A stretch of 64,000 nucleotides of DNA from sequence record PV785814.1; one strand, written 5' to 3'. The notes under the pieces were generated by a model. It saw only the letters and a list, made by a program, of their open reading frames with translations. It was not told where the DNA came from and ran no database searches. Position numbers and translations under genes: made by a program. Shown one piece after another: positions 382-56,480 of this stretch. Positions within the stretch are counted from its first letter, which is position 1, and each line of letters starts with the position of its first letter.

Positions 382-487
382 ACTCATCTTCAGCAAAGAG
401 ACAGAAACGATGAGTCTAGTCTGTTTAATCAAGTTGTTCATCTTCAATGAAGAGGCGAGAACGATGAACTCTAGCTCGCTTAATCAA
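382..487 (-). repeat. Two tandem 54-55 nt units, each folding into the same H-type pseudoknot
   Basis: Units share UUGAUUAA leader, CUAG loop, GUU linker; stems covary (ACAGA/UCUGU vs GCGAG/CUCGC; ACUCAUC/GAUGAGU vs GUUCAUC/GAUGAAC). Confidence 0.75.
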
Positions 488-495
488 CTGTGTTA

Positions 496-523
496 ATCTT
501 ATCAGCTTTTCAGCGAAAGTCAA
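496..523 (-). promoter_or_regulatory. Sigma70-type promoter P2 of the ncRNA array
   Basis: TTGACT-16 nt-TAAGAT on minus strand with upstream A-tract. Confidence 0.6.
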
Positions 524-2282: not shown

Positions 2283-2467
2283 ATTATACGATGAAAATGG
2301 CGTATTCTAAACAAGTGGGGATTACACTAGTTTCTCTAATTTTTCTAATATCTCTAAGTTCACTAAAACTACTAATACTACTAAGATGAGACGGAATTTT
2401 TCCGCCTCAGATCCAATCCTGCCGCTTCGCTCTAGATTCAGATACAAAAAAAGCCCCGAAGGGGCTT
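2283..2467 (-). repeat. Dispersed element copy 1: terminator + GCTTCGC + CGGAA-TTT-TTCCG palindrome + 9-bp CTAA iterons + promoter
   Basis: CTAG/CTAA at 2327, 2336, 2345, 2354, 2363, 2372, 2381; promoter TTTAGA(2306-2311)-17-TATAAT(2283-2288) toward gene 1; terminator hairpin 2452-2467. Confidence 0.8.
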
Positions 2468-28214: not shown

Positions 28215-28252
28215 AGACAAGCATAGTATAGCTTGAAAGTCAATATGATTAA

Positions 28253-28423
28253 ACGGGTGAGATTCATTTCTCACCCTTTTTTGTATGAGCGAAGCGGCAG
28301 AATGGAAAGAGGCGGAAAAATTCCGCATCATCTTAGTAGTATTAGGGGTTTTAGTGAACTTAGAGATATTAGTATTATTAGTATTAAATACTTGTTTAAA
28401 CCCGTGAATGTAACTGCTATTAT
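28253..28423 (+). repeat. Dispersed element copy 2 (opposite orientation)
   Basis: Terminator GGGTGAGA...TCTCACCC-T6; GCGAAGC; GCGGAAAAATTCCGC; TTAG at 28333, 28342, 28351, 28360, 28369, 28378; TTTAAA(28395-400)-17-TATTAT(28418-23). Confidence 0.8.
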
Positions 28424-28463
28424 TAACGCATAAAGACAATCCCTCCTTGATCCTTTGTATTGC

Positions 28464-56331: not shown

Positions 56332-56480
56332 AGTATACATATCATTCGAGTGTCTGTAAACAAGAATCTCACTAATACTTCTAATATCACTAAAAGTACT
56401 AATTCTACTAAGATGATGCGGAATTTTTCCGCCTCTTACCTTTTTTGCTTCGCATACAAAAAAAGCCCCGAAGGGCTTTC
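56332..56480 (-). repeat. Dispersed element copy 3, upstream of uvsY
   Basis: CTAA at 56372, 56381, 56390, 56399, 56408; GCGGAATTTTTCCGC; GCTTCGC; terminator AAAAAAAGCCCCGAAGGGCTTT; promoter TTTACA(56355-60)-17-TATACT(56332-37). Confidence 0.8.

Follow-up and report, generated by a model that had tools for sequence, protein, structure and literature searches.

Replication of bacteriophage T4 is initiated at no common local motif but from at least five origins that fire early (PMC3016281). Two of these, oriF and oriG, consist of a middle promoter and an unwinding element located downstream of it, and a third, oriE, needs an early promoter and includes so-called iterons for which no protein or role has been established (PMC3016281). 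The PeSL module of T4-type phages, including nt-1 and KVP40, comprises a stem-loop, an AT-rich stretch, an early promoter, an SD and an ATG (PMC4122927, PMC2839356). In KVP40, AsiA is present and MotA absent, and a further partner has been postulated (PMC1524935). Mini-hairpins with the consensus GCGNAGC are known from primase-dependent single-strand origins such as RSF1010 ssiA (PMC13037366). KVP40-type phages form a widespread group of marine jumbo phages that infect a broad range of hosts and serve in phage work for aquaculture; the origins even of T4 are only loosely defined. Contiguous short repeats, set head to tail at a sub-helical period near promoters, are typical of regulators of the ribbon-helix-helix type such as MetJ (8-bp boxes) and omega (7-bp heptads), and occur likewise in the ParR/ParG centromeres.

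The window analysed here, a stretch of 64,000 nucleotides, corresponds with 100% identity to the terminal 64,000 bases of the record of Vibrio phage QD01 (PV785814.1, 248,370 bp), a KVP40-like, T4-type myovirus of the Straboviridae; a window coordinate equals the record coordinate minus 184,370. Three copies of an intergenic element are found in it (Table 1). The original prediction had listed their parts, all of which were recovered by site reading, alignment and promoter/terminator consensus scans, and the feature is thereby confirmed as real. The core of about 76 bp is made up of the palindrome CGGAA-AAA-TTCCG, the pentamer TCATC and 5–7 TTAG motifs at an exact 9-bp period. Read in the direction of the flanking genes, copies 1, 2 and 3 run from a terminator through GCGAAGC, GGCGGAAAAATTCCG, a dinucleotide (TC or CA), TCATC and 5–7 units of TTAG-N5 to a promoter. 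The claim of five to seven repeats at exact period was upheld, with 7, 6 and 5 units in copies 1, 2 and 3, respectively, and period-9 arrays were called independently at all three sites by Tandem Repeats Finder. The promoter pointing away from the array, with 17 nt between the -35 and -10 elements, was likewise recovered in consensus scans at all three copies and is of the T4 early type (TTTANA-17-TATAAT-like). A 28-nt core, CTAAGATGANNCGGAATTTTTCCGCCTC, gave three exact matches in the window against 0 expected (100 shuffles).

Table 1. Features of the element in the window (copies 1–3, window coordinates) and positions of the three further loci of the QD01 genome (A–C, record coordinates).
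Feature	Position	Strand	Genes downstream
Copy 1, intrinsic terminator after gene 3 (PeSL stem-loop)	2451..2467	-	
Copy 1, GCGAAGC (GCGNAGC mini-hairpin consensus), sense strand	2424..2430	-	
Copy 1, palindrome GGCGGAAAAATTCCG	2392..2406	-	
Copy 1, TCATC junction and 7 units of 9 bp (6 TTAG, 1 CTAG)	2322..2389	-	
Copy 1, early-type promoter TTTAGA-17-TATAAT	2283..2311	-	gene 1 (dNMP kinase)
Copy 2, intrinsic terminator after gp12-like gene	28255..28276	+	
Copy 2, GCGAAGC	28289..28295	+	
Copy 2, palindrome GGCGGAAAAATTCCG	28311..28325	+	
Copy 2, TCATC and 6 TTAG units of 9 bp	28328..28386	+	
Copy 2, early-type promoter TTTAAA-17-TATTAT; TATAAATA late promoter next	28395..28423	+	wac
Copy 3, terminator hairpin after gene 35	56462..56479	-	
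Copy 3, GCGAAGC	56447..56453	-	
Copy 3, palindrome GGCGGAAAAATTCCG	56419..56433	-	
Copy 3, TCATC and 5 TTAG units of 9 bp, touching the -35 element	56367..56416	-	
Copy 3, early-type promoter TTTACA-17-TATACT	56332..56360	-	uvsY
Locus A	QD01 record 34.9 kb		glutaredoxin gene, then genes 24 and 55
Locus B	QD01 record 78.2 kb		gene without assigned function, then DNA methyltransferase gene
Locus C	QD01 record 129.9 kb		lipoprotein gene

The analysis was extended to the whole genome using a profile built from 24 copies of the element (six from QD01, five from KVP40, four from VH7D, orthologues from 1.081.O, nt-1, F86 and D482, and five distinct metagenomic copies). The profile search of QD01 returned six matches with E ≤ 6e-19, the next match being noise (E ~4), and the family of three in the original prediction is therefore one of six, with three more copies outside the window. 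All phased runs of at least three TTAGs in the 248-kb genome fall inside the six elements (0.016 expected), and no partial copies were found in QD01 by the profile search or the phased-TTAG scan of the genome. Each of the six copies is co-directional with local transcription. The fixed order of parts that had been proposed holds at loci A, 1, 2 and 3 but not at loci B and C, neither of which has a terminator, and C also lacks a promoter. Specifically, locus B lies directly after a stop codon, with no stem-loop and with a TTGACA-type promoter, and locus C follows a stop codon with neither stem-loop nor promoter, its array reaching the start codon in QD01, KVP40 and VH7D and itself supplying the ribosome-binding site through a GGAG within the last unit. 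A sigma-70/T4-early-type promoter is present at the other five loci. Since loci B and C do without the full order, terminator and promoter constitute a frame of the element rather than its core. The anchor and the -35 element are separated by a variable distance (53, 56, 67 and 78 nt), and the -35 element directly adjoins the last unit at loci 3 and A. The GCGAAGC part, which the original prediction gave as GCTTCGC, is present in all three window copies, but genome-wide only four loci out of six have it on their sense strand, and it is a common heptamer in the window (15 occurrences against 7 expected). No DNA-binding or initiator-like domain was found in the neighbouring genes.

The frame seen at loci A, 1, 2 and 3 is that of the PeSL. 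A terminator followed by a promoter is the generic PeSL frame of T4-type phages, which weakens the argument for origins as originally framed (PMC4122927). Unlike PeSLs, which are numerous, lie in hyperplastic regions and are associated with insertions and deletions, the core of palindrome and TTAG array occupies six fixed syntenic core loci, and the accessible text of the two PeSL papers makes no mention of the palindrome or of 9-bp repeats (PMC4122927, PMC2839356).

Searched with a 156-bp query, ~50 KVP40-type Vibrio phage genomes each gave about six matches, and nothing else matched. The gp35–element–uvsY arrangement was kept in all 51 related records, down to ~70% flank identity, and the 9-bp phasing, the absence of which from relatives would have counted against the original prediction, is retained in ~50 phages and in metagenomic relatives. 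With the 24 copies anchored at TCATC, TTAG also held at the units that the search pattern had left free, in 23–24 of the 24 copies at units 4 and 5 and in 17–23 of the 24 at unit 6. TTAG, its phasing and the junction were constant across the compared copies. Spacer identity between orthologues was 0.44–0.68 as compared to 0.52–0.74 at third codon positions of the adjacent uvsY, and by this comparison of sequences the array spacers drift at about the synonymous rate of that gene. Retention of such a short motif in exact period, between spacers that vary freely, implies that motif and phasing are recognised by something. At locus 3, the number of units changes in whole 9-bp steps, with five in QD01, six in 1.081.O and three in D482. 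Similarity between copies was 0.84–0.86 within the same genome, 0.84 for non-orthologous copies of different genomes and 0.88 for orthologues; the copies of one genome are thus no more alike than those of different genomes, indicating that the six loci are old, vertically inherited and not homogenised, and on these figures concerted evolution or a recent spread of copies was rejected. Among the metagenomic copies, two are orthologous to loci 2 and A, and their flanking proteins are 57–72% identical to those of QD01. In the D482 group, the locus-3 copy has partly decayed with the promoter still intact, suggesting that the copies are redundant. No equivalent was found 5' of uvsY in Aeromonas phage Ah1, the nearest outgroup, where the gene context is different. 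A generic scan of viral contigs for five TTAG-N5 units returned only unrelated coding or simple repeats, and a skeleton scan of bacterial genomes, which missed the island described below, gave 11 matches, all to simple (TCATCTTAG)n-type repeats and none in Vibrio. No published description of the element was found in a literature search the scope of which excludes the KVP40 genome paper (PMC180978). The feature is strongly conserved and, as far as searched, undescribed.

In nearest-neighbour calculations of duplex stability, all six arrays ranked among the least stable 0.5% of 60-bp windows genome-wide, and four reached the top 0.1%, with the minimum on the array itself, upstream of the promoter (offset 0–30 from the anchor), and not downstream. 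The sense strand of the arrays contains 1.5% C against 23.6% G, as compared to 20.5% C in the genome. Both the low duplex stability and the C depletion could be explained by motif composition alone. The gaps between the six sites on the circle are 43.2, 51.7, 56.9, 25.9, 28.1 and 42.5 kb, a spacing more even than that of random points (P = 0.0045–0.0075 over three measures, in a test made post hoc). GC and AT skew along QD01 follows transcription only and shows no replication signature.

Beyond the phages, three metagenomic copies had flanks without similarity to QD01, and one of the contigs carried Thoeris (ThsA, ThsB) and a restriction-modification pair. An exact look-up of this ThsB led to six variants of an island of ~18 kb, which sits between an lpxL-like gene and one for a peptidase M32. 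The genomes carrying it belong to V. parahaemolyticus, V. alginolyticus, V. fluvialis, V. vulnificus and V. cyclitrophicus. Its genes include those for a large serine recombinase, a Cro/CI-like HTH protein and a small resolvase, together with defence cargo and the gene of a 346-aa protein that has a gp45 C-terminal clamp domain, a homologue that shares 50% and 43% identity with QD01 gp45 over the two clamp domains, between which lies an insertion of ~135 aa. The element is present in all six variants (E 1e-18 to 1e-22), within a gene-free stretch of 1.1–1.7 kb, and is the only DNA common to the island region and sequenced phages, matching the same 51 genomes. In the same stretch, directly 5' of a gene for a protein of 334–382 aa, are iterons, which in one variant are at least 10 copies of TCGACATG at 11–12 bp and in a second at least seven copies of CGTAGTTGTAT; both repeats fit the definition of an iteron-type origin. 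The C-terminal ~125 residues of this protein are conserved and the N-terminal ~200 are unrelated between the two iteron variants. An N-terminus that varies in step with the iterons would be expected of an initiator with a swappable DNA-binding head, and from its sequence the protein is a candidate initiator; no phage homologue of it was found. The gene-free stretch contains 4–5 C(GNA)G mini-hairpins on the sense strand of the element against 0–1 on the other, with a shuffle mean of 0.15 and a background of ~0.25 per kb. GCGAAGC occurs in all island copies. In three variants, the left arm of the palindrome is mutated, with AAAAATTCCGCATCATC and the array kept, so that neither a hairpin nor a dimer site is indispensable. 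Comparison of the island proteins with Pfam, PHROGs, PADLOC, NCBIfam and PDB sequences identified only the gp45 domain, Thoeris, the restriction-modification genes and the recombinases; capsid, packaging or terminase genes were not seen in the island, and a literature search found no paper describing it. That a host island tied to these phages borrowed the site points to a phage factor, or phage-modified machinery, as its reader. With iterons and a candidate initiator of its own, the island might put its copy to another use, for instance in packaging, in sensing infection or as a decoy. The gp45 homologue and the Thoeris and restriction-modification cargo could equally belong to a pure defence island.

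The strand features, easy melting, even spacing, redundancy, uvsY position and island context (iterons, candidate initiator, DNA mini-hairpins, clamp homologue and clamp-dependent late promoters) are jointly best explained by a site at which the duplex opens and replication proteins load on one strand. The core is probably a strand-oriented cis-acting site, with the GCGAAGC mini-hairpin optional, that is read by the machinery of KVP40-type phages. The reading we tentatively favour is that the element is a candidate site for unwinding and for loading the phage replication machinery (helicase, primase and clamp), the six copies being origins or fork-assembly sites. In such a mechanism, a sequence-specific factor would nucleate at the TTCCG(Y)(M)TCATC junction and spread across the phased TTAGs, and the array, as the most easily melted DNA, would open, aided by negative supercoiling behind the outward-firing early promoter and shielded from incoming transcription by the upstream terminator. 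The exposed sense strand would present stable hairpins followed by a C-free unstructured tract on which a 5'->3' helicase and primase may load, and loading on this strand would send the fork in the direction of transcription. A clamp loaded at the element could also feed late transcription, and a Vibrio island depending on or targeting these phages may have copied the site into its own origin region, thereby tapping the same machinery. A more ambitious version, in which the six sites are the first sequence-defined origins in a T4 relative, with the clamp loaded there switching on late transcription, and the island is the first satellite or parasite of a T4-type phage, tapping or poisoning its machinery, seems to us rather unlikely.

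The idea of origins put forward originally is thus partly supported: it keeps phasing, spacing, melting, strand bias, the uvsY position and the island context on its side but loses parts of its T4 reasoning. In the analogy with a promoter paired with an unwinding element, that element lies downstream of the promoter in oriF and oriG, and the unstable DNA lies upstream here. The likeness to oriE, which requires an early promoter, lies in the direct repeats found close to it (PMC3016281), and its "protein-bound iterons", which had been cited in support, are without an established protein or role (PMC3016281). In the T4 record they consist of GTTGAAGGTAAT-type 12-mers spaced 24 bp apart within gene 5, which to judge from the sequence are probably coding repeats, and oriE was dropped as an analogue on this account. 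The QD01 profile gave no match to the T4 origin regions, including oriE. A parallel is provided by oriF, which the T4 annotation places where uvsY begins, immediately downstream of late gene 25, copy 3 of QD01 having the same topology at a uvsY promoter downstream of a late gene. Like the R-loop origins of T4, the element occurs several times per genome, is tied to promoters at five of its six loci and includes an easily melted segment; unlike oriF and oriG, which need no specific site and have a MotA-dependent promoter, it consists of six near-identical modules, five of them upstream of early-type promoters and one lacking a promoter altogether. The adjacent easily melted region is shared with the iteron-type origins of plasmids and lambda-like phages, whereas their repeats of ~17–22 bp at helical phasing with an initiator nearby differ from the contiguous 9-bp units of the element. 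Mini-hairpins of the GCGNAGC/CCGAAGG type, known on one strand from the single-strand initiation signals of the G4/St-1/alpha3 complementary-strand origins and of RSF1010, where ssiA/ssiB adjoin iterons (PMC13037366), have a sequence match in the GCGAAGC of the element, but no phased TTAG array is known from those signals and two of the six phage loci have no mini-hairpin. The island, with its mini-hairpins beside iterons and a candidate initiator, resembles an IncQ oriV in this respect. A short conserved site repeated six times offers a direct handle that can be mutated, used for pull-down or moved to a plasmid.

The promoter adjacency of five of the six phage copies counts against origins, since such a position would look like that of a regulator site. 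In this alternative, the main rival, which we consider somewhat unlikely, a phage or host DNA-binding protein on the phased TTAGs activates, represses or insulates the early promoter directly 3' of the array. At loci 3 and A, where array and -35 element abut, orthologues shift by whole 9-bp units with the junction kept, contiguous short repeats would suit a regulator of the MetJ or omega kind, and the presence of the array at only a few of the early-type promoters of the genome suggests a special regulon. Satellites commonly copy helper-responsive promoters, as with P4 and P2. QD01 encodes AsiA, and one version of this explanation holds that the array is the missing middle-mode switch of AsiA+ MotA- phages, the island copy being an infection-responsive control region; a regulatory role would point to the missing AsiA partner in MotA-less phages, a question standing since 2004–2006. 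Against this stand the absence of a promoter at locus C and, in island variant L194, of any sigma-70-type promoter for ~500 bp after the array, as well as the varying distance to the -35 element. No regulator was found, and the even spacing, the strand-specific C depletion and the single-stranded DNA mini-hairpins are left unexplained; to our knowledge, strand-specific composition and even genome-wide spacing are not features of MetJ, omega or ParR/ParG arrays.

A packaging signal, a recombination substrate and an RNA element are less likely than either the origin or the regulator reading. Packaging-initiation (pac-like) sites read by the small terminase, one of which the island copied in order to be packaged, appear improbable. 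Pac sites such as that of P1 contain phased short repeats within bendable AT-rich DNA, the element is directional, 9 bp per unit is by our estimate close to the arc per subunit around an 11–12-mer terminase ring, satellites typically carry the packaging signal of their helper, and this island has iterons and a candidate initiator besides. However, packaging in T4-type phages is regarded as essentially sequence-independent, a headful phage needs a single pac site rather than six that face both ways, no copy in QD01 is located at the terminase genes, the mini-hairpins and strand bias would go unexplained, and in the island neither capsid nor terminase genes were seen. It is distinctly improbable that the element is a PeSL subfamily or mere homology without a dedicated function, serving as a recombination substrate, including for recombination-dependent replication of the island. 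A homology of ~84 bp at 80–96% identity would suffice for T4-type recombination. Four of the six copies are framed by terminator, AT-rich stretch, early promoter, SD and ATG, as PeSLs are defined in nt-1 and KVP40 (PMC4122927), and the promoter lies ~97 nt past the stem-loop at element loci against ~30 nt in ordinary PeSLs of QD01, a comparison that is qualitative as to spacing, the terminator pattern used for ordinary PeSLs being too strict. Selection on a phased 4-nt motif with drifting spacers indicates recognition rather than mere homology, however, and the loci are fixed core positions instead of hyperplastic regions with insertions and deletions, B and C lack the PeSL frame, and the copies show no concerted evolution. 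Finally, a hairpin with a UUAG-repeat platform for an RNA-binding protein, or a strand-specific termination signal, is highly improbable. The orientation with transcription at all six loci would suit an RNA, B and C being necessarily transcribed within an operon, and so would the folding energies of -21 to -25 kcal/mol for the sense RNA against -10 to -12 kcal/mol for the antisense, together with C->T variants of the palindrome that retain G.U pairing on the sense strand. The strong folding of the sense RNA arises because UUAG self-pairs through G.U. Four loci are situated between a strong intrinsic terminator and the next promoter, and C(GNA)G mini-hairpins are a feature of DNA and not of RNA (PMC13037366). 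The fold of the alignment conserved only the 6-bp palindrome hairpin, with 0 compensatory pairs and no conserved pairing register within the array, and Rfam gave 0 matches for the element; a structured RNA family was dropped on these grounds.

The island copy amounts to a natural experiment on the role of the site, and its occurrence in an island with a clamp homologue, Thoeris, restriction-modification genes and iterons suggests a new phage–host or satellite interaction. In its recombinase, repressor-like HTH protein, iterons and initiator candidate, and in its helper-type promoters and cis element, the island resembles satellites that copy their helpers (P4/P2 with late promoters and cos; PLE/ICP1 with RepA and iterons), from which it differs in that no packaging or capsid genes were seen and that its presumed helper would be a T4-type phage. 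KVP40-type phages have the five Vibrio species carrying the island among their hosts. The T4 late-promoter consensus TATAAATA occurs in the gene-free stretch, before the initiator candidate and, in the opposite direction, before cargo genes. Between island variants, only the loop N of the mini-hairpins varies, and one variant has an array enlarged to 14 units.

The element, a module of about 76 bp comprising a palindrome, TCATC and five to seven TTAG motifs at a 9-bp period, is also found in an integrated island of Vibrio genomes. The island encodes a large serine recombinase, a Cro/CI-like HTH protein, Thoeris, an R-M pair and a homologue of the gp45 sliding clamp sharing 43-50% identity with QD01 gp45 and carrying an insertion of ~135 aa. 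It further contains a single copy of the phage element, iterons accompanied by a candidate initiator, and T4-type promoters matching TATAAATA, the T4 late-promoter consensus. This ~18-kb island appears to be a previously undescribed satellite or defence island directed at T4-type vibriophages.

The iterons differed between island variants. The initiator candidates of L190 and L194 shared a conserved C-terminal region of ~125 aa and had unrelated N-terminal halves, a combination that looks like specificity switching. In variant L193 a 36-bp block of four units had been triplicated, enlarging the array; this could reflect selection for extra putative binding sites, for example as a decoy or a stronger site.

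Positions of features in the island, QD01 and related phages
Feature	Position	Context
Integrated island, ~18 kb	L190 1548-20061; also L191-L195, L157, L151, L143	V. parahaemolyticus, V. alginolyticus, other Vibrio genomes
Differing iteron sets	L190 12162-12334 (TCGACATG); L194 12005-12142 (CGTAGTTGTAT)	Upstream of initiator candidates
Enlarged TTAG array, 14 units	L193 12646-12792	One island variant
QD01_383, annotated ORF, hypothetical, 63 aa	window 28245-28433	Covers copy 2 wholly (terminator, palindrome, array, promoter)
Degenerate element copy, uvsY locus (locus 3)	L137 748-826	Phage D482 group
oriE "iterons" of T4	L187 7403-7570 (T4 record 79.4 kb)	Within gene 5 coding sequence
Identical terminator AAAGCCCCTTAATTGGGGCTTTTTT, three intergenic sites	QD01 record 77249, 105177, 126652 (L003, L004)	
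AsiA homologue QD01_303	L005 10756-11055	QD01

Among the phage copies, the one upstream of wac (copy 2) is overlapped by QD01_383, probably a spurious gene call since no equivalent ORF was found at the remaining copies of the element. At locus 3 of the D482 group the palindrome reads GTGGAAAAAAACCG and only three TTAGs are left, with the promoter intact, which suggests that single copies of the element are dispensable. The oriE "iterons" of T4 consist of 12-mers spaced 24 bp apart; as this period matches eight codons, they probably encode repeats in the gp5 needle rather than serving as initiator sites.

The three AAAGCCCCTTAATTGGGGCTTTTTT terminators are ordinary stem-loops of the PeSL (promoter-early stem-loop) type, one of them with a promoter 30 nt further on. 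Across both strands of the whole QD01 record TATAAATA occurred 15 times, fewer than the ~25 expected from base composition; the majority of these sites lay upstream of structural genes, and two followed elements A and 2 at distances of up to about 330 nt. QD01 has a gene for an AsiA homologue and no annotated MotA, the same unexplained combination as reported for KVP40 and Aeh1 (PMC1524935). Near the start of the window (384-500), a coding region contains a tandem repeat with a 54-bp unit (2.1 copies, 78% match).
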